NCBI RefSeq assembly: GCF_044704955.1
Contig: NC_091990.1
Span: 177,320,001 to 177,384,000 of the forward strand
DNA from: Pristiophorus japonicus
Lineage: Eukaryota
Direction: 5' to 3'
Length of the DNA: 64,000 nt
Both the position numbers and the translations under genes were made by a program. The notes beneath the pieces were generated by a model. The model was not told the origin of the DNA. It saw only the letters and a list, made by a program, of their open reading frames with translations, and made no database searches. How positions within the stretch are numbered: the stretch's first letter is position 1; every line of letters starts with the position of its first letter. Positions 1 through 58,887 of this stretch are shown here, one piece after another.

Positions 1-1050
1 TGTCTGCCTTTTTTCTCAACCGAGAATTCCCCTCTCCTGTGGTTGACATAGCTGTTGACTGTGTCCATTCTATTTGCCGCACTTCTGCTCTCACTCCTTC
101 CCCTCCCTCTTAGAACCATGATAGGGTTCCCCTTGTCTTCACCTTTCATCCTACCAGCCTCCACATGCAACGGATCATCCTCTGTCATTTCCACACATCC
201 AGCATGATCCCACCAGCAAACATCTTTCCCTCTGCTTTCAGCATTCCGAAGGGACAGCTCCCTCCACAACACTCTGGTCCACTCCTCAATCACCCCCAAC
301 AACCCCTCCCCTTCCCTGTCCAGGGCCTCAAACACTCCTTCCAGGTGAAACAGCGATTTACTTGTACTTCTTTCTATTTAATATACTGTATTCGTTGCTC
401 ATGATGCAATCTCCTCTACATTGGGACACCAAACACATATTGGGTGATTGCTTTACAGAACACCCCCGTTCAGTCCGTAAGCATGACCCCAAGCTTCCAG
501 TCGCCTGTCACTTTAATTCTGTGCTCCAATCCCACTCTCATCTTTCCATTCTCGGCCTCTTGCACTGTTCCAACAAAGCTCGCGTAAGCTCCAAGAACAG
601 CACCTCATATAGGCACCTTACATCGGACTCAACATAGAGTTCAACAATTTCAGACAAAAACACTGCCCATACTTTATTCTCTTTTTCTGTTTTTTTCTCT
701 CTTTCTCATGGCAGCTGTTGATGATTCTGCCATTTCCATTTACACCCTATCTAGGCGTGTCTTTTCTTCCTTAACTTGCCTCGTTCCCATCTCCTTTCGC
801 CTTGCACCACCATCCCTTTTATCTCTTTATCTCTCCTGCCTTACACCCTATCACAGAACTTCCCTTTTGTTCTTTCTTCCTTTCCCCTTTCCCTGCCCCT
901 ACACTTGCTTAAAAACCTGTTACATCTCTGTTTGCAGTTCTGACGAAGGGTCAACGACCTGAAACATTAATCCTGTTTCTCTCTCCACAGATGTTGCCTG
1001 ATCTGCTGAGTATTTCCAACATTTTCTGTTTTTTTTTCAGATTTCCAGCA
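1..1050 (+). mobile_element. Penelope-like retroelement 3' part (decayed GIY-YIG endonuclease plus terminal repeat)
   Basis: Frame-shifted RVPLVxTFHPTSLHMQRIIL and FTCTSFYLIYCIRCS.CNLLYIGDTK...EH...PVACHFN (GIY-YIG), followed by a pyrimidine-rich tail and a CTGACGAAGGG..GAAAC motif. Confidence 0.8.
940..970 (+). ncRNA. Minimal hammerhead-ribozyme-like motif in the Penelope terminal repeat
   Basis: CTGACGA-aGGGTC-aac-GACC-t-GAAAC: CUGANGA and GAAA core boxes flanking a short stem II. Penelope elements are known to carry minimal hammerheads. Confidence 0.55.
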
Positions 1051-1470
1051 TGCGCAGTATTTTGCTTTTACATGAACAAGTATAATATTGTGAAAAGGGT
1101 ACTTACATTATCAATTACCACACTTAATCAATTTCCGTGGCGAGTTTAATGGGCAATTAATGTGCAAATGCAGGAACTTCATGAAACTCATGGGGTAGTT
1201 AAGGGCAAGCTGCCATTTATGTGACGCTAACAGCAAATTGTCCAGCAACTTGTGGCGATTTGCAAAGCACGGGGTATCTCGTTATCCACGGAACCTGCTG
1301 GACGATTTGCTCATTAATAACGATGTGTGTCGTTCACATGCCATTACTTTTTCAGCAAGTTCCAGTCAATTATTTCAAGCTATCTTTATGTTTTTGCCAC
1401 GATTTGCAGCCAAAGGTTTTCACCATCATGTGTGCAGGGATTTGTGTTGTGTACAAAATGCTCAAATTAC

Positions 1471-1896
1471 CTGCTTTAACGTTCAGTACTGCTTTTGTAG
1501 TACAACCTTCAGTTGTTCTGTCCTGTTTAACTTCAATGATTAGCTCAGCGCCATCATCCTTGGATACATCAGGACACAGGGTAATGTTACAGGGTATTCT
1601 GAAATTCTTTTCAGCAGTATGTTGTAATTCTGGCACCTCAGCAGTGAAGGAGTCATCTTCCTTGCAGGAATCTAATACACTTGTGAGGGGAATATATGCT
1701 CCCTTTTCTGCTGGCAAGCTCCCTACTGGAATTTGCCAGTGAAATAGCTTCTTTGTTTCCTGCTCCCCTTTCCTCTTCAAGGATGTAACAATGTTCACTG
1801 TCTCTCGACAGAACAGAGTGACTTCCCACTTCAAATGGATTCTCTCATTGTGTTTGATTTCATCCGGTTTTGTGATATCACTAATTGTAGGAGGAT
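1471..1896 (-). CDS. Post-TM (cytoplasmic) exon encoding a degenerate Ig-like domain
   Basis: 426 nt, phase 1-1, ttttctgttgtag acceptor and CAG|GTAATT donor, within ORF 1370-1912. Non-repetitive, DPPTISDITKP...DDGAELIIEVKQ...KAVLNVKA. Joining to the TM exon is inferred from strand, order and phase. Confidence 0.75.
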
Positions 1897-3330
1897 CTAC
1901 AACAGAAAACAAAACAATGTGAAATAAACTTTATGTTCCAACTTACTCACGTGCATCCTTGTTCAGAGATGATGTACAAACTGAATAGCAATGTTCCAAA
2001 ATGTGTGTCATTGCAGAGGATTGTAGCCTCATGCATTGTCATGGTGTCAAACTGCACAATTAATCCTCTGTAAATGACAATGCAGATTCTAGCATACACA
2101 ACATACCATTGTATTTACGAAATCAGAAACTGCCCTTTCTACAAAAATAAAAACATTAACAACACAGAACCCCAATTTTCTGAGACTGCTAAATTGATGT
2201 AGTTCCCTGTGGCCTGTGGATAAGGCACATCTGCGGCAGCATTGTGAAGGACAGGCTTCACCAAATTTGAGAAGTCAATTGCCCCGCTCTTTACTGGGGT
2301 GGGATTTCCAAGCGGGGAGGGTGGGTTGGTGCGGATGGGGAGGAGTAGGGTTGGAGGGTCCTGGTTTCTCTGACCGCCATGGTGTTTTAACAGGTTTCCT
2401 GCCTGGAATCCAGCCTGATTGACAGGCGTGACTACCTGTTTGATGGTGAACGCTGTAGAAGAGGGCACAGCCCAGGAGCAGGTAAGTTACAAGAGGTTGG
2501 GTATAGGGTGGTTTGGGGAAGTCGGGGCTGGTCGTGGGGTTCAGAGATAGATCGGAGGCAGAGATGCAGTGTCAGAGAGAGAGATGGGGGAGTGGGGGAA
2601 GGATTGAAGAGATGGGAGTTTGGGGGACAGAAATGTGGGTAAGTCGATGATCACGAAGGGGGGTGGGCTATGTTCGTATTTGTGTCGGGGGGAGATTGTT
2701 GCGGTTTTGGGGGGATGGTGGGCATTGTTTATAGGTTAGGTTGTTGGGACTGGTGTAAACACTTCAGTTCCTCCTGGCCCAGGAGCTGCAGTGTAAAAGC
2801 TGATGGATTCGCTCTACTCATCTCCTTTTACCTGCCGGTTTTCCCGAAGCCCAGGAAACCCGGCCGATTGTGGTTAAAAATAGAAATCTGTTAAAATGGA
2901 GGCACAATCTTCCTTGACTGTTTTCAATGACCCTCCAGCCTCCCAAGAGTGGAATGATCACCGACCCTCTGTCCTGTAAAATGGGGAGTGGATGGGGTCA
3001 AGGCGGGTTGGGTTCAGATTTCAGATTTTTAACATTTGCCTTCACATCCGACTCAAACACATCTATTTTGGGCGTTTAAAATTTGCTACAAAGCAATAAT
3101 AAAACATTGGACCCAATCTTTACCTGAGAGTCGGAGCAGGTGCCTGCGGACCCACAGCGGGTTGCCATCCTGAACGTTTTAACAGCGCGTTCTGCACTTC
3201 TCGTTTAACTACATTACATCAATTGTAATAGTCACTTGGGTTCCCCGGCCAATTAAATGGAGTTCTCGTCTTTCCCTCTTTGCAGAAGAGAGCGCAGAAC
3301 AGGAGTGATAGAGAGAGAACAGGAGGTGGC

Positions 3331-5110
3331 TGTAACGTTCTTACTCTACAGTATGAAACCACACGAGGCACGTTCTGGGGACAAGGTCACTCTGTGACTT
3401 TAGCTCTTTATTCACAGCACTCCAAAAGCGATGACCCTGCGTGGGACCTCCCTTTTTATACCTGTGTGATCAGGTAATGAGTGTCTCCCACAAGTTCACT
3501 CCTTGTGGTCAAGGTATGCATCTAGGTTGAGTGTATACAGTAATACAGTGGTATTACATTGTGGTTACATACATGACATCACCTTCCCCCCCAAAAGTTT
3601 TATTGGGATCATAGGTTTATTCTTTCAGGTGGTCTACGCTCCCTCGTGGAGCGCCGCAGTTGGAGCTCTGGTTGTTGGACACTGACGTGAGTGTCTGTCA
3701 CCTGTGGTGATTCCGGTCTGTCCGGGCTGGCCGCAGGGACTTTGCATTCTTCTGATTGCTCTTGTTGCTCATTCACTGGCGGTGGTGTGAGCTCCATCTC
3801 ATGGTCTTCTTTAGGTTCCACCATGTCGATGCTGAACCTTTTTTTTACTTGGTCCAGATGCTTACGGCATATCTGACCATTGTTGAGTTTTACTACGATG
3901 ACCCTATTCCCCTCTTTGTCAATTACAGTACCCTCAAGCCATTTGGGCCCCATGGCGTGATTGAGGACGAATAGAAGGATCATTTATTTCTATACATCGC
4001 CCCCTCGAATTACGGTCATGGTACTCGTTTTGTGACTTGTGCTTGACCTCAACTATGTTGGTCAGGACTGGGTGAATGAGGGACAACCGAGTTTTGAGTG
4101 TCCGTTTCATTAGTAGCTCTGCGGGCGGGACCCCCGTGAGCGAGTGTGGTTGGGATCTATAGGCCAGCAGGAGGCGCGATAGGCGGCATTGTAGGGAGGT
4201 TCCTTGAATCCTGAGCATACCTTGCTTAATGATTTGGACAGCACGTTCCGCCTGGCCATTGGAGGCCGGCTTGAACGGCGCAGTCCTGACGTGGTTGATG
4301 CCATTGCCCGACATAAACTCCCGGAATTCGTAGCTTGTGAAACATGGACCATTATCACTAACCAGGATGTCCGGCAAGCCATGGGTTGCAAAGATCGCAC
4401 ATAGGCTTTCCACAGTGGTGGATGACGTGCATGAATTCAGAATGTTGCACTCGATCCATTTCGAGTACACATCTACCACAATAAGAAACATCTTTCCCAT
4501 GAACGGGCCCGCGTAGTCAACATGAATGCGTGACCATGGCCTGGTGGGCCAGGGCCACGGGCTGAGCGGGGCCTCCCTGGGGGCATTACCCAGCTGGGCA
4601 CACATCGTGCACCTGCGAACACAGTGTTCCAGGTCTGAATCAATTACAGGCCACCAAACGTGTGACCGGGCAATGGCCTTCATCAGCACAATGCCTGGGT
4701 GCTCACTGTGGAGTTCCCTAATGAATGCCTCGCTGCCATTCTGGGGCATAACTACCCGGCTGCCCCATAGTAGGCAGTCGGCTTGGATGGAGAGCTCATC
4801 CATCCGTCTGTGGAATGGTCTGACCTCCTCAGGACATGCTCCGTATGCGGGTGCCCAATCCCCAGTCAGGACACATTTCTTAATCAGGGATAGGAGGGGA
4901 TCTCTGTTTGTCCAGATTTTGATCTGGCGGGCTGTGATGGGGGAGCCTGCGCTCTCAAAGGCATCGACAGCCATGACCATCTCAGCGCTTTGCTCTGCTG
5001 CCCCGTCAGTGGTGGCCAGTGGAAGCCCTCTGAGTGCGTCAGCGCAATTTTCAGTGCCGGGCCGGTGCCGGATGGAGTAGTCATAAGCAGCCAGCATGAG
5101 AGCCCATCAC
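3331..5110 (-). mobile_element. Truncated Gypsy/Ty3 LTR retrotransposon (3' LTR 3331-3578, integrase)
   Basis: TG...CA LTR next to a polypurine tract. ORF 3934-5097 has the HPG...WWP...CxxC zinc finger, RIHVDYAGP, VSDNGP and SNGQAERAV (rve integrase). No 5' part present. Confidence 0.9.
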
Positions 5111-5112
5111 TG

Positions 5113-5321
5113 AGGGGAAATAATGGGCCTGAATTGAATAAATTTAAGACAGAAATAGAAGTTTCTTAAACGATAAGGGGACAAGGGGATAAGGGGTTAT
5201 GGAGAGTGGGCGGGGAAGTGGAGCTGAGTCCATGATCAGATCAGCCATGATTTTATTGAATGGCAGAGCAGGCTCGAGGGGTTGTATGGCCTACTCCTGT
5301 TCCTATTTCTTATGTTCTTAT
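5113..5321 (+). mobile_element. CR1 LINE 3' end fragment
   Basis: CR1 3'UTR motif (gaatggcagagcaggctcgagggg...cctactcctg) and (ttcttatg)n tail. Confidence 0.8.
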
Positions 5322-6850
5322 GTCCTTGCCGACCTTGGTATTGAAGTCACCGAGGAGGATCAGCTTTTCGTCTGTAGGGACGCGGGACAGGGATTTTGAG
5401 ATGCTGGAGTAAAAGCCCTCTTTGGTCTCATCTCTTGCATCGCATGTTGAGGTGTACACACTGATGACTGTGGCACATTGGTTCCCGGATAGGATGAGTC
5501 GGAGAGTCATGAGAAGTTTGTTAATCCCGCAGTGGGAATTTCTGAAGTGGTTGACCAGCTCGTTCTTGATAGCGAAACCGACTTTGTGGAGGCGCCGTTC
5601 TTCCTCTGGTTTCCCTTTCCAGAAGAAGGTGTAACCTCCACCGTGTTCCTTGAGCTGGCCTTCCCCTGCCCGCTGGGTCTCGCTTAGGGCGGCGATGTCA
5701 ACATTGAAGCATCTAAATTCTCAGGCAACTATGGCGGTGCGGCATTCTGGCCTGTCGCTGTTGGAATTGTCCACAAGGGTTCTGATGTTCCAGGTCCAGA
5801 ACTTCATATTAATGAGTATTGGATGCCTGTGTGTGAGTTCTTTTAACGTGGGGTGGTCGTTGCACACCGGCTACCACACGGGCTTAGCTGAGCAAGGTCT
5901 TGATCCAGTGGCAAGGGGGTCCAAGATGACTGGAGACCAGGCACTGCTGTATGAGCCGAATTGCCTACGGCGAGATGTTGGCCGTAAGCTCGGTGCTGAA
6001 TAGCGCCCTTTGGTGAGATGGTAGGTGATCCGAGGCCTGGATGGGGGCAGGCATTGGGAAGGTAATTTTGTGGGGAGGAGAGTTAGGGTGTTCAGAGTGG
6101 AAGGAGGAGGGGTCAGTGTGGTCACAGCCATTGTGCTCACCGCGTGCTGGAGGGGAAGAGGCCAGGTCGTCGCTGTAGGAGGAGAGACCCAGGCATCGCA
6201 GGAGGAGGAGGTCCAGTCACAGGAGGAGGGGAGAGGTCCAGTCACAGGAGGAGGAGAGGTCCAGTCACAGGAGGAGGAGAGGCCCAGTCACAGGAGGGGA
6301 GAGGTCCAGTCACAGGAGGAGGAGGTCCAGTCACAGGAGGAGGGGAGAGGTCCAGTCACAGGAGGAGGAGAGGTCCAGTCACAGGAGGAGGGGAGGTCCA
6401 GTCACAGGAGGAGGAGGGGAGGTCCAGTCACCTCAGGAGGAGGAGAGGTCCAGTCACAGGAGGAGGAGAGGCCCAGTCACCTCAGGAGGAGGAGAGGAAG
6501 AGGCCCAGTCACAGGAGGAGGGGAGAGGCCCAGTCACAGGAGGAGGGGAGGCCCAGTCACAGGAGGAGGGGAGAGGTCCAGTCACAGGAGGAGGGGAAGA
6601 GGCCCAGTCCCTGCAGGAGGGGATGAGGCCCAGTTGCCGCTGGGTGGAGTCTCAGAGGGAAGGCTCGCAAGTGAGATAGGCCCAAGCCTGTGGTCGGAGC
6701 TGGTCGGAGCTGGTCACAAGCTCACCAGGTGCCGGCGGGGATCGGGTGAAGCAGCTGAGTTGGCCACGTCCAGCGGGGAGTGTGAGCTAGGTCTTTGGGG
6801 AGGGTGGGGGATGGGCAGGGCTCAGATAGTTGCCCTTCAGCAAGGGATTT
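5322..6850 (-). mobile_element. RTE-clade (BovB-like) LINE, 5' portion only
   Basis: The minus strand encodes an APE endonuclease: TWNIRTL..RP.CRTAIVA.EL..FNVDIAALSET...GYTFFWKG...VGFAIKN...LILLGDFNTKVG (5322-5810). The extent of the 5'UTR to about 6850 is less certain. Confidence 0.75.
6197..6625. repeat. GA-rich minisatellite, unit about 21-27 bp (GAGGTCCAGTCACAGGAGGAGG)
   Basis: About 17 tandem copies of CCAGTCAC with variable GGA spacers. Confidence 0.95.
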
Positions 6851-8234
6851 AGCAGTAAGGGAAATACGTAGGGGTAGAAAAAAATGCACCCACTTTAGGC
6901 TTAAACAGTGGGGAGGGGAGATTGGGGGAGCGAAGAGTGAAGTTAGCAGCAGATGGCCAGAGGGAAATTTGTTCAGGGGGAGCTCCCGAGGAAGCTACCA
7001 TCCTGCCCGCCATCTTGGATCTCCTCAAGAATTGGTGTGCCAGTGACATCCTCACTTTCCTTCGGTTTAATTTGTCCTTAAACAACAATGCAGTCAAAAT
7101 ATATTAGCCAGCACACAAACTGACCTGGATCCATCGCAAATGGAATTTGAATGTGACAATTTTAAAAGTACATCATTCTAGATCCCTATAGTTTAAGTTC
7201 TCTACAGTATGTATGAAAAACACAGAATTATCCTGACATTATCAACTTAAATTGAAAAATGTAATTCATAGTTCAAATAATGAATTTCACCAGTTCTTCC
7301 ATTAATGTCTCATGTCCTCAGTTTGATCAAATAATTAAAAGAGGAGCAGCTTTTCACGTGATTTTAAATTTTAATCCCTTTCAAGGGCAATTAGGGAGGG
7401 ACAATAAATGCTGACCATGTCAGCGATGCCACATCTCAGGAACGAATAAAGAAACCCACATTTTTACACTCCGCCTTTAATGATGTCCACATGAACGATA
7501 AGGAAAATTATTTCTTGAAACGTAAGCAAGCAGCATATTAAAGCCTCGACATATGAAATATCGTCAACATCTGCCAAGTGAAGTAAAGGTTCCTGTTTCC
7601 AGCTGACAGACCCAACTTTAACACCAACCCATAATAGTTAATCACCATTTTAACTGATATTTTGTTCGAGCCAAATGATTTTTGATACGTCTTCAATTAA
7701 AAATGTCTCACATCGTGCACTGCCCGAGTGTAATGAACCAGAAGCAAAGTGCTGATTATTGTGAATCTTCAAATACAAAATGACTCGATCTATATAAAGA
7801 ATGATTTCCCAACAATTCAGTTATGTTTACTCTGTGTTACTTGTGTTGAATTTGCAGAATATTAGCTGAAAGGAAAGTGTTATTGTTTAAAACAACAAAG
7901 TTAGCAGCAGAACCAGAAGAGTTGGGTCGATAACAATTAGAGCAATTTTTACAAACCAGAATAGAGACTTGTGATGAAAGGATTACTAGCCTGCAGTGAC
8001 ACCAATAATTATCACAATGAGGCCAGTTAATGTTCGTCAAAATCATTGTTAGAGAGAGAAAAGAGCAATCCACAAATTGTGGTTACTTGAGAAGAAATTA
8101 TTTCTCTACAGTTGAGTACAACAACAATAAATACGCAACATCTTGAAACAAATTGTCACATACGAGTCCAATAACCAAATAGTTTTCACTTTAATATTTT
8201 TGGTTGTTGTTTATGAAGATGAAAAGGACTTTAC

Positions 8235-8336
8235 CTTTAGATTTTTTCTTCCAGAGACAAACTCCTAAACACACTGCACAAAGCAGCACAGCAGAACCAA
8301 AGATGCCTCCAATAATCGGTCCAATTTGTTTTTCTT
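8235..8336 (-). CDS. Transmembrane exon of the B7-H6-like gene
   Basis: 102 nt, phase 1-1, ttaacag acceptor and GTAAAG donor. Encodes EEKQIGPIIGGIFGSAVLLCAVCLGVCLWKKKSK, a hydrophobic span followed by a basic stop-transfer. Too short for the ORF track. Confidence 0.85.
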
Positions 8337-8810: not shown

Positions 8811-9670
8811 AAACATAAGAACGTAAGAACATAAGAAATAGGAGCAGGAATAGGCCATTTGACCGCTCGAGCCAGCTCCGCCATTTAATAAGGTCATGGC
8901 TGATCTGATCATGGACTCAGCTCCACTTCCCCGCCCGCTCCCCATTACTCTTTATTCCCTCACCGTTCAACAATCTGTCTATCTCCACCTTAAATGTATT
9001 CAATGACCCAGCCGCCACAGCTCTCTGGGGCAGAGAATTTCACAGATTTACAACCAGCTGAGAGAAGAAATTCCGTCTCATCTCAGTTTTAAAGGGGCGG
9101 CCCCTTATCCTGAAACTATGCCCCCTAGTTTTAGTATCCCCTATGAGTGGAAATATCCTCTCTGCATCCACCTTGTCGAGCCCTGTCATTATCTTATATG
9201 TTTCGATAAGAGCACCTTTCATTCTTCTGAACTCCAATGCGTATAGGCCTAACCTACTCAACCTATCTTCATAAGTCATCTCTGGAATCAACCTAGTGAA
9301 CCTTCTCTGAACAGCCTCCAATACAAATATATCATTCCTTAAATACAGAGACCAAAACTGCACGCAGTACACTTGGTGTGGCCTCACCAATACCCTATAC
9401 AGTTGTAGCAGGCTTCTCTGCTTTTATACTCTATCCCCCTTGCATTAAAGGCCAACATTCTATTCGTCTTCCTGATTACTTGCTGTACCTGCACACTAAC
9501 ATTTTGTGTTTCATGCACAAGGACACCCAGGTCCTTCTGTACTGCAGCACTTTGCAATTTTTCTCCATTTAAATTATAATTTGCTTTTTCTGTCAAAGTG
9601 GATAACCTCACAGTTTCGAACACTGTACTCCATTTGCCAAATTTTTGCCCACTCCGCTTGTCTATAAACC
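8811..9670 (-). mobile_element. 5'-truncated CR1 LINE
   Basis: (acataaga)n tail. ORFs give LVRPH..YCVQFWS...RRMKGALIETYKI...TRGHS, the CR1 ORF2 C-terminus. Confidence 0.9.
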
Positions 9671-10580
9671 TTTCTGTGGAGCTAGGAGGAGCAAGAGTAA
9701 CATTCAAACTCCAACCACACCCAGTGCTCAATGAACAACTCCTGTGTGGAGTCCAGACTTCAGGCATTATAGCTGCTGGTTTGTCCTTGACTTTCCCGAT
9801 TTATGTGTACTGTGTTAAAACAAGCTGTGGTAGGTAGATTATGCCTAAACTTCTCACGTACAAACTGGGAGCTGTGTTGAAGTATTACTAATTCTCTGAA
9901 GAGCTGGGTAAGGGAAGTAGAAAGATAGAGATTTAAATAAAGGTGGAAAATACATAGAACAGAAGAAAAAGGAAAGGGTAACCTTTTTGGACTTCAATAG
10001 CTGACAAGGCAAACAAATAGAAAATTCTACAAAGTGGACAAGACGACGTTGACACCCTGATTTCAGCCAACCCTGATTGCTTAAGTTCTCCTAAAAATTG
10101 AGTTAAAGTATCCTGAGTAAAGAACACAGCTTATGAGCCTCATAAATTCTATGTTTAAAAAGGATTGTTAAAGAACATTTTATCTCGTAGCACTATTCTA
10201 CAGTGCTGAGAAGATCTATTAAAGTTAAAATCTACTGACAAATATATTGGATGCCTGTCCCATTTGCACTGTTTGCTGGAGAAAAACATTGTGAATGCAA
10301 GGAAGAAAGAAACATGGTAAGTAGTTGCAGGAGTACGCCATTTGATCATGGCTGATATCAAAGCCACAATATATTGTGAGGCAACTTTAACGAGTCTCAG
10401 ATCAGTATTTTCACAGTCCCCACATGAACAGTGTGACTTGGGGTCTGAAGAGCTAATAATGTCTGCTCCAAAAGAAAATGGTTGGTAACTATGGATGTTA
10501 TGTGTGAGGAATGTCATGGGAGCTTCATTACTGGAAGGAAATAAATTATAAGTGAAACCTGATCTCGAACCAGATCTTAC

Positions 10581-10889
10581 CTTCATCTGGGTCAATTTCC
10601 AGTGTAAGATTGCCGGTGACTGTTTTATGCTGCACCACACATCTGTACTTAGTACGATCATCCAACGTTGGTTCAATTCGTATTTTACTGGAAACACTGA
10701 ATGTCCCATCACTGTTTGTAATTAGATCCTCAGTGGATTGAGTTTTTGGAACATACACCACTTTTCCATCTGATAACTTTAACCAACTGATATTGATCTG
10801 CTTGGGATAAAATTCCTGAGCATCACATGTCAAAAAGCTCTCTGCACCATTTGCAACTTTTTGTGTGGATGTGCTGAGTTTTGGTTGGG
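10581..10889 (-). CDS. IgC1 exon (copy B) of the B7-H6-like gene
   Basis: 309 nt, phase 1-1, same splice sites as copy A, open frame, LTCDAQEFYPKQINISW...YRCVVQH. Confidence 0.9.
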
Positions 10890-13800
10890 CTGTGGAAGAG
10901 AGAACAGGATATATAAGCTGTTAGTACATCACCATACAACAAGCTAGATCTCACTGATTCTTGATCTGAGAAACTAGAAAAATACATCCTAGCTGTTTTA
11001 TCAGAGGAGCTACTGCAATGCCTCTGTCCTTTACTTCCATCATGCCGTTTTCTTGTTTTTGAAAAACGTTTTTCCCCGCCTGTGTTGAAGACAATGCGGG
11101 GGATGATTTCATGTCCAAATATTCTGTCGACATCTATTTTTGGGTGCAGATGGGGAGTTGAAGAAGGGAATCAGTTAAAAAGGAGTTCCACCGGATGGCC
11201 ACCTAATCTCTGTCCTCAAGCAATTTCAAGAACATCAGCTTCACTGAGACGAGTGACACCTCAGTCCTTGGGGGCTCCATTGGTACAGTCTCAGACACAA
11301 ATCTCCCAACTTCATGACACTGAAGTAGTTCCACACAGGATGTGAGGATCATAAAATGGAAAGAATTGAGGCACAAGGAGTAGTCACTGTGATAAGAAGT
11401 AGTAGTAATAGTGGCAGCAGGGCACAATGAAAGGACAATACGGTCGTACATGTGATATCTTCAAGAGCACACTTAACACACAGTCTGTATGATGGCTGCA
11501 TTTCCGGAACTTCCTGTGGAAGCCTACTTCCTGTCTGTTGACCTGACTGTTTCTTAAACAGCACTAGCTGCGGTAACACAGTACGTCCACAGTGTGGCGC
11601 TACATACATAACACTTTTCCCTCCTTAATGAAGAAGTCATTATAACAAACAATCATCATATATAACTTGCATGGTTATACATAACAAAGGACATGGACTT
11701 ATTTTGCTATATTTACAAATCAAGCTTAACGACTTGTTTTGTGTTTCGAAGACGATATCTTCACTCTCGAACAGAACCTTCCAAACATGGTGTCGAATTT
11801 AAACTCATTCAAGGCTGATCCTGAGGGAAATTTTCTTCCAAGTGATGCCCTTGATTTCCATTTGAACTCTTTCTCATTTCAGACTGTATGTTTTCCTAAC
11901 TCGGACTCAGACTTACATTCTGACTTTCTCTTGGACTTGTTTTCAGTATATTGGATGTAGGATATGCTACTGGTGTATCAAAACTATCTGATGAGTAAGA
12001 AATAATTAAATCACTCCCACTCTCAACTACTTCCATGTCTGTGGGTAAAATACAATCAATGTGAACAAATCTAACCTGTCCATTATCAAACATCTTGACC
12101 AAATATGAACGAGGACCACATATCTTCACCACTCTTCCTGGTAACCACTTTACCCATTTATGGTGATGGTTCTTCACTCTCTCCTTCTGATTTAATTTCA
12201 CACTTCTCTCTTTTACTCTACCTCTATCATGATTCTTTTTCTGTCTTAATTGTGTCTGTTCTACAGACTGTGCCAAGTTTGGTTTTATCAACGAGAATCT
12301 GGTTCGTGGCTGTCGTTTGAGAAACAACTCTGCTGGTGTTCTACCAGTAGTTGTGTGAGGCGAATTACAATACATTATTAGAAAATTAGCCAATTTGTGG
12401 TCCAATGACAACTGTCATTCCTATGGATTTGGATCCAACGTTTGTTTGATGAGGGCACATTTTACAATTTGTATGGTGCGCTCTGCTGCCTCATTCGAAG
12501 CAGGGTATTATGGTGGAATCTTGGTATGTTTCACACCATTGTTGCTCATGAACTGTGCAAATTCTTCTGAATGAAATTGTGCTCCATTATCCGAAACAAT
12601 TTCTTCTGGGAGGCCAAATGAAGAAAATAATCTTCGCAAAATGTCTAATGTTTTACTTGTTGTTATTTTCCACATTGGAAACACCTCAACCCACTTCGAA
12701 TGGGTATCAATCACAATGAACAATTGTTGTCCTTCTAGCTCAGCAAAATCAATATGTAGCCTTGCCACACTCTGGGAGGCCATTTCCATGGCTATAATGG
12801 TACTGATGGTGGTTGGTTGCTTACCGAATGACATGTGCTGGTCATGGAGGGCTCCTAATAATTTGGACCTGAATTTATTTGGTATAACCACTCTTGCACC
12901 CCACATGATACAATCTTTATCGACTGATAATTCATTCCTACGAATAAAGAATGGATGAATTTCTTTGTCTGTTACCTGGTTTGGCCATCCGTTTGCAATA
13001 TACTCATACACCTTTGACATAAGTGGGGGTCACGTTTGGTTGCTCTACCAATCTCTTCAACTGTGACTGGCAGTTCATCAATGTATGAAAAATAGAACAC
13101 CTTTTCCCTATCGGGTGTAACTTGTGATGGGGAAGGCAATCTAAACATTGCATCAGCATTACTGTGATCAGCTGATCGTCAATATCATATGTATATGCTG
13201 ACAAAATCAAAGCCCATCTCTGCATTCGGGCTGCAGCTCATGTTGGAACTGGGGACTTTGAATGGAGGATTGCTGTCAGGGGCTTATGATCCATAATGAG
13301 AGTAAACTTACGACCATACAAGTAATTGTGGAACTTCTTGAACCCAAAAATTAATGCCAAAGCTTTTCTTTCGATTTGCGCATAATTACACTCACTGGCA
13401 CTGAGCGTGCGTGAAGCAAAAGCAATTGGTCTCTCCTCTCCACTACTTAATACATGAGAGATTACTGCCCCAACTCCATACGGAGAGGCATCACATGCTA
13501 GCTTGATCTCCTTAGATATGTCATAGTGAACTAACATGGTGCTCTCTACCAATTCGCTTTTACACTCCTTGAATGCTGTATCACATTCTTTTGACCACTT
13601 CCAATGGGCCTGTTTTTGCAAAAGTTCCTTCAGTGGATGTAATACTGTTTTGGATCGATAATAATAGATCCAGGTTCAGGATCTGGATGAATGTTAAATA
13701 AGAGACAAAACAAATGAAGTAAAGATAAATCACCATTTACTGAGAGAAAAGAAACATAATATAGTTTACGAAGAAAAGGGAAGTATGATAAGATGCAACA

Positions 13801-17567: not shown

Positions 17568-19661
17568 ACATAGAAAATAGGTGCAGGAGGAGGCTATTCG
17601 GCCCTTCTAGCCTGCACCGCCATTCAATAAGTTCATGGCTGAACATGCAACTTCAGTACCCCATTCCTGCTTTCTCGCCATACCCCTTGATCCCCCTAGT
17701 AGTAAGGACTTCATCTAACTCCTTTTTGAATATATTTAGTGAATTGGCCTCAACAACTTTCTGTGGTAGAGAATTCCACAGGTTCACCACTCTCTGGGTG
17801 AAGAAGTTCCTCCTCATCTTGGTCCTAAATGGCTTACCCCTTATCCTTAGACTGTGTCCCCTGGTTCTGGACTTCCCCAACATTGGGAACATTCTTCCTG
17901 CATCTAACCTGTCTAACCCCGTCAGAATTTTAAACATTTCTATGAGGTCCCCTCTCATTCTTCTGAACTCCAGTGAATACAAGCCCAGTTGATCCAGTCT
18001 TTCTTGATAGGTCAGTCCCGCCATCCCGGGAATCAGTCTGGTGAACCTTCGCTGCACTCCCTCAATAGCAAGAATGTCCTTCCTCAGGTTAGGAGACCAA
18101 AACTGTACACAATACTCCAGGTGTGGCCTCACCAAGGCCCTGTACAACTGTAGCAACACCTCCATGCCCCTGTACTCAAATCCCCTCGCTATGAAGGCCA
18201 ACATGCCATTTGCTTTCTTAACCGCCTGCTGTACCTGCATGCCAACCTTCAATGACTGATGTACCATGACACCCAGGTCTCTTTTACCTCCCCTTTTCCT
18301 AATCTGTCACCATTCAGATAATAGTCTGTCTCTCTGTTTTTACCACCAAAGTGGATAACCTCACATTTATCCACATTATACTTCATCTGCCATGCATTTG
18401 CCCACTTACCTAACCTATCCAATCGCTCTGCAGCCTCATAGCATCCTCCTCGCAGCTCACACTGCCACCCAACTTAGTGTCATCCGCAAATTTGGAGATA
18501 CTACATTTAATCCCCTCGTCTAAATCATTAATGTACAGTGTAAACAGCTGGGGCCCCAGCACAGAACTTTGCGGTACCCCACTAGTCACTGCCTGCCATT
18601 CTGAAAAGTCCCCATTTACTCCTACTCTTTGCTTCCTGTCTGACAACCAGTTCTCAATCCATGTCAGCACACTACCCCCAATCCCATGTGCTTTAACTTT
18701 GCACATTAATCTCTTGTGTGGGACCTTGTCGAAAGCCTTCTGAAAGTCCAAATATACCACATCAACTGGTTCTCCCTTGTCCACTCTACTGGAAACATCC
18801 TCAAAAAATTCCAGAAGATTAGTCAAGCATGATTTCCCTTTCACAAATCCATGCCGACTTGGACCTATCATGTCACCTCTTTCCAAATGCACTGCTATGA
18901 CATCCTTAATAATTGATTCCATAATTTTACCCACTACCGATGTCAGGCTGACTGGTCTATAATTCCCTGTTATCTCGCTCCCTCCTTTTTTAAAAAGTGG
19001 GGTTACATTGGCTACCCTCCACTCCATAGGAACTGATCCAGAGTCTATGGAATGTTGGAAAATGACTGTCAATGCATCCACTATTTCCAAGGCCACCTCC
19101 TTAAGTACTGTGGGATGCAGTCCATCAGGCCCTGGGGATTTATCGGCCTTCAATCCCATCACTTTCCCCAACACAATTTCCTGACTAATAAGGATTTCCC
19201 TCAGTTCCTCCTCCTTACTAGACCCTCCGACCCCTTTTATATCTGGAAGGTTGTTTGTGTCCTCCTTAGTGAATACCGAACCAAAGTACTTGTTCAATTG
19301 GTCCGCCATTTCTTTGTTCCCCGTTATGACTTCCCCTGATTCTGACTGCAGGGAACCTACATTTGTCTTTACTAACCTTTTTCTCTTTACATAGCTATAT
19401 AAACTTTTGCAATCCATCTTAATGTTCCCTGCAAGCTTCTTCTCGTACTCCATTTTCCCTGTCCTAATCAAAGCCTTTGTCCTCCTCTGCTGAGTTCTAA
19501 ATTTCTCCCAGTCCCCGGGTTCGCTATTTCTGGCCAATTTGTATGCCACTTCCTTGGCTTTAATACTATCCCTGATTTCCCTTGATAGCCACGGTTGAGC
19601 CACCTTCCCTTTTTTATTTTTACGCCAGACAGGAATGTACAATTGTTGTAGTTCATCCATG
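17568..19661 (-). mobile_element. 5'-truncated CR1 LINE inserted in the ERV gag
   Basis: RT ORF (YLDFQKAFDKVPH, SGVPQ, KFADD), TSD CATATT. Gag reads YHQQY|GGPDQ across the insertion. Confidence 0.92.
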
Positions 19662-20742
19662 CATATTGTTGGTGATATAATCCTCCCTGTGTTGCCATGT
19701 TGCGCAACTGTATCGCACCCTCCGCCATAGTATTCCAAGGTTTTACCTCCCCTTCCCAATCAACGGCAGAGGGATATTTTTGCCGGACCCCTATAGTAAC
19801 CATGTCCCATAGCGAACCTGTGCCCTGGACATTCCGGAGCACTGCAGTGATATGGTGGTCCGCAGTCATGGTCCCCATTTTTATTAACTCTTCGGGGTTA
19901 AGTATTACGCCTGATGCTCCCTGGTCCCAAATCCGGGTTAGCCATTCTGACAATGATTCCCCGGGTTTTTGGTGAAATCGAGACCCTATTTCTTGTAACT
20001 CATGAGTGGTGAAGTCACGCACCCCTCTAGTGATTACCGGCTGTTCCCCATCTTGCTGTTTCGTCTTATTTGTCATAAGGGGTCTAGCTTCTGTGCTCGG
20101 AGCGTATAGGGGAGGGTCTTTAGTTTCCTCCCATTCCCCCCCCCCCTCTCTATCTGTCCACTCATATTCTGAGTCAGAGTACCACATGTCTCCGTCCCAA
20201 CGAGCCGGATCCCAAGTGGGTCCAGCTCCCAATGCACGTACCTTTGACCGATCTATCTGTCATTTCCGTCACCTGGCTTTCTTTTTATTTTGTACTGTCG
20301 CCAGATGGCACGTTAAAATTTCTGATTGTTCATTGACTTTGTCCGGCCATTCTTGTGCAGTGCGGACCGCTTCAGTCAGAGTCGAGTTTTGACTTTCCAA
20401 AACCTTAACAGCTGTTTTTAACTGTCGGTTTTCTGCCTCACTTTCCTGAAGTTGTTTACACATCGCCCTTAATGCTGTCAACAAAATCCATCCCATTTGT
20501 GGGGGACTATTTTTCTCCTGTGGGAAGCTCGCTTCCTCCAGGAGAGACAGTACCGCGTGGGATATGGTTCTATCTTTGCTCTGTTCCAATAACTGCGTAT
20601 CCCAATGTTGTGGGGGTCCAAACCGGTTGGACATTGGCAAGAGAGCCAAAACCCTTATCCCTCATGCTCCACCCTGTTATTCTATACTTCTCTCCCGCAG
20701 GAGGAGACTGCTTCTTGTCTTTTCTCTTGAACATTTTACCAG

Positions 20743-24556: not shown

Positions 24557-27500
24557 TCATAGAAACATCGAAAATAGGTACAGGAGTGGGCCATTCGGCC
24601 CTTCGAGCCTGCACCCCCATTCAATAAGATCATGGCTGATCATTCCCTCAGTGCCCCTTTCCTGCTTTCTCTCCATACCCCTTGAATCCCTTACCCGTAA
24701 GGGCCATATCTAACTCCCTCTTGAATATATCCAATGAACTGGCATCAACAACTCTCTGTGGCAGGGAATTCCACAGGTTAACAACTCGGAGTGAAGAAGT
24801 TTCTCCTCATCTTAGTTCTAAATGGCCTACTCCTTATCCTAAGACTGTGTCCCCTGGTTCTGGACTTCCCAACATCGGGAACAATCTACTGCATCTAACC
24901 TGTCCCATCCCGTCAGAATCTTGTATGTTTCTATGAGATCCCCTCTCATCCTTCTAAACTCCAATGTATAAAGGCCCAGTTGATCCAGTCTCTCCTCATA
25001 TGTCAGTCCGGCCATCCCGGGAATCAGTCTGATGAACCTTCGCTGCACTCCCTCAATAGCAAGAACGTCATTCCTCAGATTAGGAAATCAAAATTGAACA
25101 CAATATTCCAGGTGAGACCTCCCCAAGGCCCTGTACAACTGCAGTAAGGCCTCCCTGCTCCGTACTCAAATCCCCTAGCTATGAAGGCCAACATACCATT
25201 TGCTTTCTTTATCGTCTGCTGCACCTGTATGCCAACTTTCAATGACTGATAAACCATGACACCCAGGTCTCGTTGCACCTCCCCTTTTCCTAATCTGCCA
25301 CCATTCAGATAATATTCTGTCTTCGCATTTTTGCACCCAAAGTGGATAACCTCACATTTATCCACATTATACTGCATCTGCCATGCATTTGCCCATTGAT
25401 CTAACCTGTCTAATTCACCCTGCAGGCTCTTAGCGTCCCCCTCACAGCTCACACTGCCACCCAGTTTAGTGTCATCTGCAAACTTGGAGATATGACACTC
25501 GATTCCCTCATCCAAATCATTGATGTATATTGTAAAGAGCTGGGGTCCCAGCACTGAGCCCTGCGGCACTCCACTAGTCACTGCCTGCCATTCTGAAAAG
25601 GACCCATTTATCCCGACTGCTTCCTGTCTGCCAACCAGTTCTCTATCCATATCAGTATATTACCCCCAATACCATATGCTTTGATTTTGCACAACAATCT
25701 CTTGTGTAGGACCTTGTCAATAGCCTTTTGAAAGTCCAAATACACCACATCCACTGGTTTCCCCTTGTCCACTCTACTAGTTACATCCTCACAAAATTCC
25801 AGAAGATTTGTCAAGCATGATTTCTCCTTCATAAATCCATGCTGACTTGGACCAATCCTGTCACTGCTTTCGAAATGCGCTGCTATTTCATCCTTAATAA
25901 TTGATTCCAACATTTTCCCCACCACTGATGTCAGGCTAACCAGTCTATAATTACCCGTTTTCTCTCTCCCTCCCTTTTTAAAAAGTGGTGTTACATTAGC
26001 TACTCTCCAGTCTTTCAGAACTGATCCTGAGTTGATAGACTGTTGGAAAATGATCACCAATACATACACTATTTCTAGGGCCACTTCCTTAAGTACTCTG
26101 GGATACAGACTATCAGGCCCTAGGGATTTATTGTCCTTCAATCCCATCAATTTCCCCAACACAATTTCCCGCCTAATAAGGATATCCTTCAGTTCCTCCT
26201 TCTCACTAGACACTTGGTCCCCTAGTACTTTCGGAAGGTTATTTGTGTCTTCCTTCGTGAAGACAGAACTGAAGTATTTGTTCAATTGGTCTGCCATTTC
26301 TTTGTTCCCCGTTATAAATTCACCTGAATCCAACTGCAAAGGACCTACGTTTGTCTTTACTAATCTTTTTCTCTTCACATATCTATAGAAGCTTTTGCAG
26401 TCAGTTTTTATGTTCCCAGCAAACTTCTTCTTGTACTCTATTTTCCCCCTCTTAATTAAACCCTTTGTCCTCCTCTGCTGAATTCTAAATTTCTCCCAGT
26501 CCTCAGGTTTGCTGTTTTTTCTGGCCAATTTATATGCCTCTTCGTTGGATTTAACACTATCTTTAATTTCCCTTGTTAGCCACAGTTGAGCCACCTTCCC
26601 CGTTTTATTTTTACTCCAGACAGGGATGTACAATTGTTGAAGTTCATCCATGTCATCTTTAAATATTTGCCATTGCCTATCCACCATCAAGCCTTTAAAT
26701 ATCATTTGCCAGTCTATTCTAGCCAATTCATGCCTCAAATCATCAAAGTTACCTTTCCTTAAGTTCAGGACCCTAGTTTCTGAATTAACTGTGTCACTCT
26801 CCATCCTAATAAAGAATTCTATCATATTATGGTCACTCTTCCCCAATGGGTCTCACACAAGATTGCTAATTAGTCCTTTCTCATTACACATCACCCAGTC
26901 TAGGATGGCCAGCACCCTGGTTGCTTCCTCGACATATTGGTCTAGAAAACCATCCCGAATACACTCAAGGAAATCCTCCTCCATCGCATTGCTACCAGTT
27001 TGGTCAGCCCAATCAATATGTAGATTAAAGTCACCCATGATAACTGCTGTACCTTTATTGCATGCATCCCTCATTTCTTGTTTGATGCTGTCCCCAACCT
27101 TACTACTACTGTTTGGTGGTCTGTACACAACTCCCACTGGCGTTATCTGCTCCTTGGTATTCCGCAGATCCACCCATATTGATTCCACATCATCCAAGCT
27201 AATGTCCTTTCTTACTATTGCATTAATTTCCTCTTTAACCAGCAATGCTATCCCGCCTCCTTTTCCTTTCTGTCTATCCTTCCTAAATGTTGAATATCCC
27301 TGGATGTTGAGTTCCCAGCCTTGGTCACCCTGGGGCTATGTCTCCGTGATGCCAATTACATCATACCCGTTAACTGCTATCTGCGCTGTTAATTCATCCA
27401 CCTTATTCTGAATACTCCTCACATTGAGGCACAGAGTCTTCAGGCTTGTCTTTCTAACACACTTTGCCCGTTTAGAATTTTGCTGTAATATTGCCCTTTT

Positions 27501-30061: not shown

Positions 30062-31880
30062 TATAGGAACATAGGAACAGGAGTCAGCCACTTAGCCCCT
30101 TGGCTGTTCCGCCATTCAATGAGCTTGTGGCTGATCTGCAACCTAACTCCATATACCTGCCTTTGCCGCATATTCCTTAATACCTGTGGTTAATAAAAAA
30201 AAAAATCAATCTCAAAATTAAAATTAACAATTGACCTAGCATCAAATGTTGTTTGCACAAGAGAGTTCCAGACGTCTACCATGTGTAAGAGTGTTTCCTA
30301 ACTTCACTTCTGAAAAGCCTGGCTCTAATTTTTTGACAATGCCCCCTAGTCCTGGACTTCCCCAACCAGCGGAATTAGTTTCTCTCAATCTACCCGATCA
30401 GTTCCCCTCAATATCTTGAAAACTTTGATCGTCACCCCTTAACCTTCTAAATTCCAGGGAATACAACCCTAGTTTGTGTAATCTCTCCTTGTAATTTAAC
30501 CCTTGGAGCGTAGGTATCATTCTGATAAATCTATGCTACATTCCCTCCAAGGCCATATATCCTTCCTAAGGTTTGCTGCCCAGAACTGAACACAATACTC
30601 CAGGTGTGGTCCAACCAGGGCTATGTACAGCTGTAGCATTACTTCTACCCCTTGTATTCTAGTCCTCGAGATGTAAAGCAGAGCATTCCATTCGCCTTTT
30701 TGATTATTTTCTGTACTTGTCCATGACATTTTAATGATCTTTGTACACGGATCCCTAAGTTTCTTTGAACCCCTACTGCTTCAAGCTTTTCACCATTTAT
30801 AAAGTTCTCTGATCTATCCTTTAAAGGTTCAAAGTGGCTGGCCAGACACTTGCCGACATTGAAATCCATTTGCCATATTTTTGCCCATTCACTTAATCTC
30901 TTAATATCTCTTTTATACTTCCATCTACATTGCTTACTATGCCACCTTGCAAACTTCGTTATGTGGCTCTCTATTCCATCATCTAACTCATTAATAAATA
31001 CGGTGAATAGTTGAGGCCACAAAACAGGTTCCTGCCAATTAGAGTACGTGACCATTATCCTCACTCTCTGTATCCTGCCGCTCAGCCTATTTGCTAACCA
31101 GGTTAATAATTTTCCTTTAATTCAGTGAGTTAACAGTCTCTTTTGAGGGACTTTATTGAATGCCTTCTCGAAGTCCATATAAATAATATCCATAGACTTT
31201 CCCCGGTCCACTACTTTAGTCACCCCTTCAAAAAATTCAATCAGGTTCATCAGGCATGACCTTTACAAATCTCTGCTGGCTCTCTCTGATCATCTGAAAA
31301 TGTTCAAGATGTTCAGTCACTCGATCCTTAATTATAGACTCTAGTAATTTCCTGACAACAGATGTTAGGCTAACTGGTCTATAAGTCTCTGGTTTGCCTT
31401 ACTCACCTTCCTTAAATAGATGAGCAATGTGTGCAACTTTCCAATCTAAAGGGACGGTTACTGAATTGAGAGAACTTTGAAAGATTACAGTTAGGGCACC
31501 TGTAATGTTCTCACCTACTTCCAGTTAAACCCTGGGATGAAAACCATCTGGTCCTGGGGAATTGTCGCTCTTAAATGCCATTATTTTCTTCATTACTGTT
31601 ATTTTGTTTATGTTAATTTTGATGAGTTCCTGTCCTTTATTCAATATTAGTTTCCAGGATGTCTGGCATGCTATCCTCTTTCTCTACTGTATATACTGAT
31701 AAAGTAATTCTTCAACAAATCCGCTATTTCCTTATTTTCATTTACAATAACCGTTATTACTTTTCCAGTGGCCCACATTGCACCTGACCATCCTCTTTTT
31801 CCCAATATAATTTTTTGTGTTGATTTTGATATCCCTTGCAAGTTTCTTTTCATACTCCCTTTTTGTAGCTCTTACTATTG
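30062..31880 (-). mobile_element. Old, decayed CR1 LINE shared in part with unit A
   Basis: CR1 tail and degenerate ORF2 ([18 protein letters not shown]). Homologous to 57510-58320. Confidence 0.8.
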
Positions 31881-32114
31881 CTGCCCCAACCGAGGTCAGT
31901 TAACTTTGTAAAGACTGCATTCTTCATGATGTCTATGGCTCAGTCACTGACTGTTAAGCTCATTGAGTCATCAGGGGAGCCAGAAGCTCTGCAACACAAT
32001 GTTGCCTTTTATAGATAGCAAACACATATTATTGCTTATAGCAGCAAATCCTCTCTACTGTGAACTTAACACCAAGTTATACAACATATCAGTAAATGAT
32101 TTTGTCTCTCTTAC

Positions 32115-32453
32115 CTGATACTTGCATTACTGAACTCTTTTCTTCTTTATGGGGAGTAACAAAAACAATGCAGGTGTATTTTCCTTCTTCGCTAAGTTGT
32201 ACATTTGGAAGGTAAAGTGAAGCATTCCCTTTCCGTAAAGCGTCGGCAAAAATCTTTGCTCCTTATCTCCTTGGGAGATGATACCCTCCATTAAATAAAT
32301 ACACTTCTGTCTGGTTTGTTTGTGATTCAAAAAACCATCGAACAATTACATTTGTGAGGTCAAGTTGTGGTTTACTGTATTTGCAGTTTAGAAGAGCATT
32401 TTTATTTACTAAAACTTCCAGCGGAGAGGGAAATAGCTCCAATTCTAAAGTGT
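32115..32453 (-). pseudogene. IgV exon (copy B) with a premature stop
   Basis: 339 nt paralog of 58549-58887 with both splice sites intact. Codon AAA (Lys, copy A) is TAA at 32263-32265, and the rest of the frame is open. Confidence 0.85.
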
Positions 32454-33729: not shown

Positions 33730-34060
33730 AAAATTCTGCTGAGCCAAAAGGAGATATTAGGACAGGTGAACAAAAGTTTGGTCAAAAAGGAGGTTACTAA
33801 GGAGAGTATTTAAGAAGGAATGGGAGGTGGCGAGGCAGAGAAGTTTAGGTAGGGCATTCCAGAGCCTGGGGTCCAAACGGTTAAAGGCACAGCCACCAAT
33901 GGTGGAGCGAAGGAAGTGGAACGCTATACAATGGGCCAGCATCAATAGAGCAGAGAGTTTTGTGGGGGTGGGGGGAGGGGGGTGGTGAGCTGGGGGTGTT
34001 GTATGGCTGTAGCAAGGGAAAGGTCATGAAGGGATTGGAACAAGAGAATGAGCATTTTAG
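33730..34060 (-). mobile_element. L2/CR1-superfamily 3' remnant (paralog at about 62030-62370)
   Basis: RSTIGGCAFNRLDPRLWNALPK..L..FL..LL...LFDQTF, typical of the L2 ORF2 C-terminus. Confidence 0.6.
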
Positions 34061-43902: not shown

Positions 43903-44211
43903 CTTCATCCGGGGCAATTTCCAGTGTAAGATTGCCAGGGAATGTTTTATGCTGCACCATACATCTGTACTTAGTACGATCATCCAACATTGGTTCAATT
44001 CTTAATTTACTGGAAGCACTGAATGTCCCATCACTGTTTGTAACTAGATCCTCAGTGGATTGAGTTTTTGAAACATACTCCACTTTTCCATCTGATAACT
44101 TTAACCAACTGATATTGATCTGCTTAGGATAAAATTCCTGAGCATCACATGTCAAAAAGCTCTCTGCACCATTTGCAACTTTTTGTGTGGATGTGCTGAG
44201 TTTTGGTTGGG
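43903..44211 (-). CDS. IgC1 exon (copy A) of the B7-H6-like gene
   Basis: 309 nt, phase 1-1, cttccacag acceptor and GTAAGA donor. AQPKLS...LTCDAQEFYPKQINISW...NSDGTFSASS...KYRCMVQH carries the C1-set signature (FYP, W, DGTF, YxCxVxH). Confidence 0.9.
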
Positions 44212-58548: not shown

Positions 58549-58887
58549 CTGATACTTGCATTACTGAACTCTTTTCTTCTTTATGGGGAGTAACAAAAAC
58601 AATGCAGGTGTATTTTCCTTCTTCGCTAAGTTGTACATTTGGAAGGTAAAGTGAAGCATTTCCGTTCCGTAAGGCGTCGTCAAAAATCTTTGCTCCTTTT
58701 CTCCTTGGGAGATGTTCCCCTCCGTTAAATAAATACACTTCTGTCTGGTTTGCTTGCGATTCAAAAAGCCATCGAACAGCTACGCGTGCAAGGTCAAGTT
58801 GTGGATTACTGTATTTGCAGTTTAGAAGGGCATCTTTATTAACTGAAACTTCCAGCGGAGAGGGAAATATCTCCAATTCAAAAGTGC
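58549..58887 (-). CDS. IgV exon (copy A, intact) of an NCR3LG1/B7-H6-like B7-family gene
   Basis: 339 nt, phase 1-1, ttttaaag acceptor and GTAAGA donor. Translates to TFELEIFPSPLEVSVNKDALLNCKYS...VRWLF...GNASLYLPNVQLSEEGKYTCIVFVTPHKEEKSSVMQVS, with V-set C-W-C. The GNASL.LP.VQL.E.G.Y.C.V.VTP block resembles B7-H6 as recalled. Confidence 0.88.

Follow-up and report, generated by a model that had tools for sequence, protein, structure and literature searches.

A candidate cytoplasmic immunoglobulin domain of C1-set descent in a B7-H6-like family of jawed vertebrates

We analysed a 64,000-nt stretch of the genome of the shark Pristiophorus japonicus (the window; all coordinates are positions in it), which carries on its minus strand a B7-H6-like gene whose transmembrane (TM) exon is followed by an exon, 1896..1471, that encodes a further domain, here called tail-Ig. 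It is likely that this exon specifies a cytoplasmic-tail module of ~140 residues in a B7-H6-like type I protein, and that the module has an immunoglobulin (Ig) fold derived from the C1 set and lacks the disulphide between strands B and F. Each exon was searched singly.

The gene itself can safely be assigned, by its sequence, to the B7 family, in the B7-H6/B7-H3 branch. The window holds a V-set and C1-set pair plus a single TM exon, and a profile of the full-length family, compared with solved ectodomains, matched human NCR3LG1 (B7-H6) at 1e-57 (4zso, 3pv6, 6yjp), ahead of CD276 (3e-44) and TAPBPR (6e-27); these values, and the name NCR3LG1-like that NCBI gives to one chimaera and one frog member, uphold the B7-H6 likeness proposed in a preliminary description of the locus. 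Searched alone against the PDB, the V-set exon V1 had its best matches in CD276 (1.5e-17) and NCR3LG1 (1.1e-10), and the C1-set exon C1b matched UrIg2 best, with IgA, MHC class I alpha3 and NCR3LG1 (6e-9) also among its matches.

Fold and ancestry of the tail domain

The tail-Ig peptide matched no Pfam family in hmmscan (the best match, at 0.077, was spurious, and no C1-set was found at E<=1) and no PDB sequence in phmmer at E<=1. AlphaFold2, supplied with a 27-row alignment, modelled the peptide at a predicted local distance difference test score (pLDDT) of 93.5 and a predicted template modelling score (pTM) of 0.87, with all five models above 91. Foldseek against the PDB gave 79 matches at E<=1e-3, the matches listed being almost all Ig domains (nanobodies, MPZ, MHC class II beta2); VIA-align, which is independent of Foldseek, placed a T-cell receptor V-delta domain first (Z 11.3, root-mean-square deviation 2.7 A over 112 residues), followed by further V/I-type Ig domains, including titin Z1Z2 (Z 10.2). 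Tail-Ig is thus confidently predicted to be an Ig-fold beta-sandwich of 9-10 strands. The ESM Atlas supplied weak leads only (<=0.81), some of them to C1/C2-set clusters, and a complex prediction with two tail-Ig copies, run without controls, scored 0.00 and speaks neither for nor against self-association.

The program DSSP assigned strands to residues 19-27, 33-40, 48-55, 67-69, 83-85, 89-92, 98-106, 117-124 and 131-136 of the model, among which we identify B (19-27, IHLKWEVTL), C (33-40), E (98-106, FRIPCNITL), F (117-124, ELIIEVKQ) and G (131-136). Strands C and E are separated by an insert of about 45 residues, which supplies an extra C' strand (48-55), bearing the most conserved motif of the domain, KRKGEQExKKLFHW, as well as the short strands 67-69 and 83-85. 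Because of the extra C' strand and the insert, the predicted three-dimensional topology is V/I-like: the model departs from the seven-strand C1 topology without C'/C'', and its best structural matches are V-type.

By descent, tail-Ig belongs to the C1 set. A jackhmmer search seeded with the extracellular C1 exon of the window recruited the tail domains of all homologs; hhalign related the shark/ray/chimaera tail-Ig profile to the ectodomain C1 profile at 96.1% (E 3.5e-9, 110 columns) and to the canonical C1-set domains that follow the TM at 98.7% (E 2.1e-16, 125 columns). In the aligned columns the four signature residues of the C1 set (the Cys of strand B, the Trp of strand C, the Cys of strand F and the C1 His), which are always C, W, C and H in ectodomain C1, correspond to W23, T37, I120 and Q124 of tail-Ig. 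The homology appears at the profile level, whereas the curated Pfam C1-set model (PF07654) does not match tail-Ig; the tail-Ig copies of the homologs are likewise not called C1-set by Pfam. These comparisons show tail-Ig to be, as judged from sequence, the descendant of a C1-set domain that has lost its B-F disulphide, with V/I-like topology and C1 ancestry.

The preliminary description had mapped C1 strands by eye onto the peptide, expecting an Ig fold of the C1 set that is free of disulphides. DSSP bears out this strand map for the AlphaFold2 model, the profile alignment does place Trp and Ile on the B- and F-Cys columns, and the fold is as expected; the C1 assignment, by contrast, stands for ancestry (jackhmmer, and hhalign at 96-99%) and fails for the textbook topology. 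The description "disulphide-free" fits the missing canonical B-F pair and goes too far if taken to mean free of Cys: tail-Ig has five Cys, of which C102, in strand E, is conserved in 27/33 copies and C77 in 17/33.

Distribution of the family and membrane topology

A phmmer search with the tail-Ig exon peptide as a single sequence against 1.84 billion representatives (cut-off E<=1e-3) returned 32 proteins, all of vertebrates, with E down to 0. In each of the 25 full-length homologs examined, a signal peptide, V, C1 and TM segment(s) precede the tail-Ig domain. The exon of P. japonicus is 57-60% identical to those of other sharks and keeps every family motif. The same search found no teleost or amniote match to tail-Ig, a result that holds for a single-sequence phmmer search only.

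Family members take two forms. The short form consists of V-C1-TM followed by 1-7 tail-Ig copies, usually with acidic linkers between them, and occurs in sharks, rays, chimaera and frogs. Heterodontus (XP_067902348) has seven near-identical copies, Callorhinchus (XP_042197527) three that directly abut, Scyliorhinus torazame two or three and Stegostoma two, with a single copy in Heptranchias, Mobula, Hemitrygon and Rhinoraja; the short-form shark proteins end in ...NPSQ. In ranid frogs at least eight short-form genes are clustered on one chromosome, one of them being the frog gene named NCR3LG1-like. In the long form, a degenerate tail-Ig (D1) comes first and 3-6 domains recognised by Pfam as C1-set come after it, with no second TM; this form is found in Callorhinchus (LOC103174895, including UniProt V9K7L7), Heterodontus, Cetorhinus, Narcine, Pristis, Hemitrygon and Amblyraja, and also in the bichir Erpetoichthys, the coelacanth and the newt Lissotriton. 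Short and long genes share a contig in Callorhinchus, Heterodontus and Hemitrygon, with adjacent accession numbers in Heterodontus. Toward their C-termini, long-family proteins (P0018, P0020, P0017) have an acidic cluster (e.g. DGDDDEVDEPVSDEMKSDDEEDMDF), one more Ig-like domain with Cys-Trp-Cys and then the conserved end ...YF.LKLS / YFTVLLS.

Since the architecture spreads from chimaera to coelacanth and amphibians, it predates the split of cartilaginous and bony fishes. On this sequence evidence the tail-Ig family was already present in the jawed-vertebrate ancestor. The earlier proposal that a C1 exon was shuffled past the TM exon and lost its B-F disulphide is thus borne out by the profiles as far as C1 descent is concerned, and its cytosolic side is taken up below; the event is neither recent nor private to the shark gene. 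Apart from the NCR3LG1-like names, family members are "uncharacterized" in databases, and no Pfam model exists for the domain. Our literature searches returned no description of a B7-type tail-Ig family; a mention in Flajnik et al. 2012 (Immunogenetics) or Ohta & Flajnik 2015 is possible.

Several features of the homologs bear on the side of the membrane at which tail-Ig resides. Full-length homologs have a cleavable leader and a single hydrophobic segment of 19-23 residues followed by K/R (KKKSK in P. japonicus), and Kyte-Doolittle scans, by which all TM segments were called, found no second hydrophobic segment after the TM in any fish or newt homolog and no other B7-type TM segment on the minus strand of the window. 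The ranid paralogs (Aquarana, Lithobates; P0063-P0069) have 1, 3 or 5 TMs before tail-Ig: the number has grown by duplication of a hairpin ending in GRLLWKYF, giving a multi-pass protein with a C-terminal tail-Ig, with basic (KKCVKGWRPW, GRLLWKYF) and acidic (DFGD, ADSD) loops in alternation. Tail-Ig remains on the K/R side. With the exception of one frog model considered below (P0031), the homologs therefore show an odd number of TMs after the signal peptide and a positive-inside flank. The preliminary description had joined tail-Ig directly to the TM exon, with no second TM to return it to the lumen. No returning segment was found in the window or in fish and newt homologs, and tail-Ig follows the TM in all full-length homologs examined, but the direct 8235->1896 junction may not be the main one, a probable linker exon (7076..6999) being available.

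The Ig domains themselves differ across the TM. Every ectodomain C1 has the complete Cys-Trp-Cys-His signature. In the tail, D1 is without F-Cys, D2/D3 are intact, and the signature reads CW[V/M]H in D4, CWFH in D5, [I/V]WCH in D6 and CW[I/V]H in D7. The canonical disulphide is thus lost, in a position-specific manner, from 5/7 tail domains, in a pattern common to chimaera through newt, and the loss of this bond from C1-set domains, kept across lineages, fits a reducing compartment. Tail-Ig has no conserved N-glycosylation sequon (<=5/33 non-redundant copies), and short-family proteins have 1.3-2.8 sequons per 100 residues outside vs 0.2-1.1 after the TM. The tail linkers are acidic, Ser-rich and not mucin-like; acidic, non-mucin linkers are atypical as extracellular spacers. 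From these features we infer that tail-Ig is located in the cytosol.

Locus layout and alternative explanations

The exons of the gene are listed in Table 1. Every exon is in phase 1-1, and the order along the minus strand is V1, C1a, V2, C1b, TM, linker and tail-Ig. The coordinates and splice sites of the TM exon and of the symmetric 142-codon exon given in the preliminary description were confirmed. The TM exon encodes a hydrophobic stretch of 23 residues that leads into WKKKSK; its product is 78% identical to the Heterodontus TM.

Table 1. Exons of the B7-H6-like gene in the window
Exon	Position	Strand	Features
V1	58549..58887	(-)	V-set, intact; Pfam V-set 2.6e-12; 71% identity to Heterodontus homolog
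C1a	43903..44211	(-)	Duplicate of C1b, 88.5% amino-acid identity, intact
V2	32115..32453	(-)	V-set with in-frame TAA at 32265..32263; translation HLPRR*GAKIF
C1b	10581..10889	(-)	Extracellular C1-set, intact; Pfam C1-set 5.5e-12; splice sites and frame good
TM	8235..8336	(-)	102 nt, phase 1-1; acceptor ag, donor gt; encodes ...IGPIIGGIFGSAVLLCAVCLGVCLWKKKSK / ...EEKQIGPIIGGIFGSAVLLCAVCLGVCLWKKKSK
Probable acidic linker	6999..7076	(-)	78 nt, 26 codons, phase 1-1; GQIKPKESEDVTGTPILEEIQDGGQD; (G)QIKPKESEDVTGTPILEEIQDGGQD
Tail-Ig	1471..1896	(-)	426 nt, 142 codons, phase 1-1, open; acceptor ttgtag, donor gtaatt

The 78-nt exon probably sits between the TM and tail-Ig exons. In tblastn, its product matched linkers of the Heptranchias protein P0009 (68% over 19 residues, 57% over 28 residues; E 3e-5 to 7e-5), its splice sites read ttgtttaag| and |gtagct, and its length of 26 codons equals that of the homologs' linkers. 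Because a Callorhinchus NCR3LG1-like protein joins the TM directly to the tail-Ig domain, without a linker, TM-linker-Ig and direct TM-Ig junctions are both possible. The donor of the tail-Ig exon, at 1470, would direct splicing to an exon left of the window; within positions 1..1470 nothing resembling a linker or an Ig domain was detected, and it is the homologs alone that imply further linker or tail-Ig exons, with an acidic end, outside the window.

The V-C1 unit is tandemly duplicated at 91-94% nucleotide identity (blocks 9450-11316 vs 42822-44636, and 31134-34166 vs 57501-62475), whereas the exons for TM, linker and tail each occur once. The resulting V1-C1a-V2-C1b layout, with its stopped V2, looks like a half-decayed 4Ig (VCVC) arrangement of the B7-H3 kind. 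V2 may be either a pseudo-exon or a null allele; since all exons share phase 1-1, a transcript can run from V1 through either C1 exon to the TM and bypass the broken V2. A leader scan of the window gave no convincing candidate for a leader exon upstream of either V exon.

The intron between linker and tail-Ig contains open reading frames (ORFs) of a retroelement integrase in the orientation of the gene (3609-5097, minus strand; Pfam rve 5.6e-12, Integrase_H2C2 1e-9). A GA-rich minisatellite lies at 6200-6634 (23/48-nt period, ~18 copies, 84% matches). The minisatellite yields long spurious ORFs on the plus strand (GGGEVQSQEEE...), which weakly mimic the acidic tails of the homologs in tblastn. 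Many copies of a LINE-like element lie in both orientations at 8814-9673, 17568-19661, 24565-26652, 40418-41819, 45432-46831 and 59050-60903; the element carries a reverse-transcriptase ORF (e.g. 18410-19759, minus strand), and one copy stands at the edge of the duplicated C1 segment. A TM-like segment near 14351 (minus strand), in the intron between V2 and C1b, probably comes from a mobile element and not from the B7 gene.

A number of observations weigh against a cytoplasmic, disulphide-free tail domain in this gene, and most of them belong to one or another rival explanation. If the TM exon were a cassette and a secreted V-C1-(Ig)n protein the main product, with the TM form minor or ended after the TM by intron retention, the post-TM Ig domains would act outside the cell. 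The phase 1-1 exons let the TM exon be skipped without loss of frame, and the secreted protein that would result from such skipping would contain the same domains; TM-skipped isoform models do exist in Heterodontus (X3, P0035) and Hemitrygon (X6, P0055), as does a TM-less model in S. torazame (P0017). A stop follows 14 codons past the donor of the TM exon and 9-10 codons past that of the linker. Moreover, neither the two Cys nor the Trp have been lost from D2/D3 of the long family in any taxon, over >400 My, which would be easier to explain if these domains occasionally fold in an oxidising compartment. We nonetheless regard a mainly secreted product as unlikely: the TM is included in most annotated isoforms (6/7 in Hemitrygon, 4/5 in Heterodontus); Callorhinchus V9K7L7 (P0041), which we assume, from its accession series, to be transcript-derived, includes TM plus tail; and the disulphide missing from 5/7 tail domains is one that extracellular C1-set domains almost never lose. 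The absence of a conserved sequon and the nature of the linkers argue in the same direction, and frogs altered the TM number by steps of two, with no TM deletion. In one isoform model from frog (P0031), four TMs are read; amino-acid composition (E+K, S+T) separates tail from ectodomain Ig only weakly, and we dropped it as evidence of topology; and C77 and C102 often co-occur, 16 of the 17 copies with C77 also having C102. A new, compensating C77-C102 disulphide was considered and rejected, this co-occurrence being about what the frequency of C102 (27/33) predicts. The function of tail-Ig, finally, is one that we infer entirely.

The stop codon in V2, which of the two V exons is the closer to the TM and tail exons, bears on the state of this gene copy, which may be partly decayed. 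Were the locus a decaying duplicate, the tail-Ig exon would be an undamaged remnant of a gene that has ceased to produce a full receptor, a view to which the dN/dS (nonsynonymous to synonymous rate ratio) of 0.5-0.7 between the duplicated exons, the leader exon not found in the window and the introns full of retroelements all lend themselves. This, too, seems improbable to us, as all exons of Table 1 other than V2 are open and have good splice sites; tail-Ig retains the family motifs and its identity to other sharks; a V1 -> C1a/C1b -> TM path that skips V2 is possible; and a dN/dS of 0.5-0.7 is in the usual range for immune receptors. The 5-6 kb intron with its retroelement might also suggest that tail-Ig is a separate gene with its own start, or a chance open frame. 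We hold this to be very improbable: among the 32 homologs none examined has the domain after its own leader, and all full-length ones place it after V-C1-TM; the exon is in phase 1-1 and has no ATG-led leader; and a chance frame is ruled out by the confidence of the predicted fold (pLDDT 93.5). A cytoplasmic tail-Ig therefore remains the reading that we prefer.

Comparison with known systems and possible role

Human B7-H6 (NCR3LG1), the NKp30 ligand, shares with the shark family a type I layout of signal peptide, V, C1 and single TM, and is the best match of the family profile among solved ectodomains; it differs in that its tail is not an Ig array, and the shark V1 exon alone scores higher with CD276/B7-H3. 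The human tail is reportedly Gag-related, with ITIM (immunoreceptor tyrosine-based inhibitory motif), SH2 and SH3 motifs, as Brandt et al. are said to have described in 2009. The butyrophilins (BTN/BTNL, V-C-TM-B30.2) offer the best functional analogy, inside-out sensing or scaffolding: they combine a B7-related ectodomain, one TM and a folded cytosolic beta-sandwich. Their cytosolic domain, however, is PRY/SPRY (B30.2) with heptad-exon linkers, whereas the shark gene has an Ig domain with acidic-repeat linkers, and Pfam found no B30.2 domain in the shark exons or in the homologs. Integrin beta4 is likewise a type I receptor with a long tail of modules of Ig-like fold and a connecting segment, and its cytoplasmic fibronectin type III (FnIII) modules serve as a cytoskeletal scaffold; these modules are FnIII rather than C1-derived Ig, the ectodomain is unrelated and no sequence relation was seen.

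The intracellular Ig domains of titin, MyBP-C and obscurin are free of disulphides and fold in the cytosol, and titin Z1Z2 is among the structural matches of tail-Ig; they are, however, I-set domains, not tethered to a membrane receptor and without profile relation to tail-Ig, which derives from the C1 set. The shark UrIg2 (PDB 9dmx; PMC12227049) is a cartilaginous-fish gene that combines V with a long C1-type array made by exon duplication. In UrIg2 all C domains precede the TM and are disulphide-bonded (PMC12227049), whereas the B7-H6-like family has its Ig array after the TM, with the disulphide mostly lost. UrIg/UrIg2 was ruled out as the family to which the gene belongs, its TM being at the C-terminal end.

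We propose the following model for the protein. The gene would begin with a leader exon that lies outside the window, continue with V, C1, TM, acidic linker and tail-Ig exons, and end with further linker or tail-Ig exons to the left of the window. In the tail domain, Trp and Ile would fill the core after loss of the B-F disulphide and of the C-strand Trp, and a C'-D insertion would have been gained. By analogy with human B7-H6, the V-C1 ectodomain may engage an NKp30-type receptor, and the folded tail modules, together with the acidic, Ser-rich linkers, may form a cytosolic protein-binding scaffold, which could link the ligand with the cytoskeleton, trafficking or signalling, as B30.2 does in butyrophilins and FnIII in integrin beta4. 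On the surface, conservation is highest in the basic C-C' segment with the motif noted above and in the E-F turn (PDxSKDDGAEL), both adjoining the strongly acidic linkers, an arrangement that suggests regulated intra- or intermolecular contacts.

C1-set Ig domains are regarded as a hallmark of the extracellular molecules of adaptive immunity, and B7-H6/NKp30 is among the oldest MHC-linked receptor-ligand pairs. To our knowledge, C1-set-derived domains have no earlier case of working in the cytosol. It is conceivable, and we advance it tentatively, that the ancestral B7-H6-type ligand of jawed vertebrates bore a cytoplasmic array of C1-derived Ig domains that served for inside-out sensing or scaffolding. 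Cartilaginous fishes, bichir, coelacanth and amphibians would have retained this array, whereas mammals, human B7-H6 carrying a Gag-like sequence, would have replaced an ancestral structured tail.

In conclusion, the advance presented here is a B7-family ligand with a new and ancient, putatively cytoplasmic Ig architecture. As no Pfam model covers tail-Ig, a new domain family would be defined. If the reading is true, it would give B7-type ligands a butyrophilin-like inside-out control, and it would reveal an ancient second, intracellular life of C1-set domains, conserved across jawed vertebrates and the first such case known to us.

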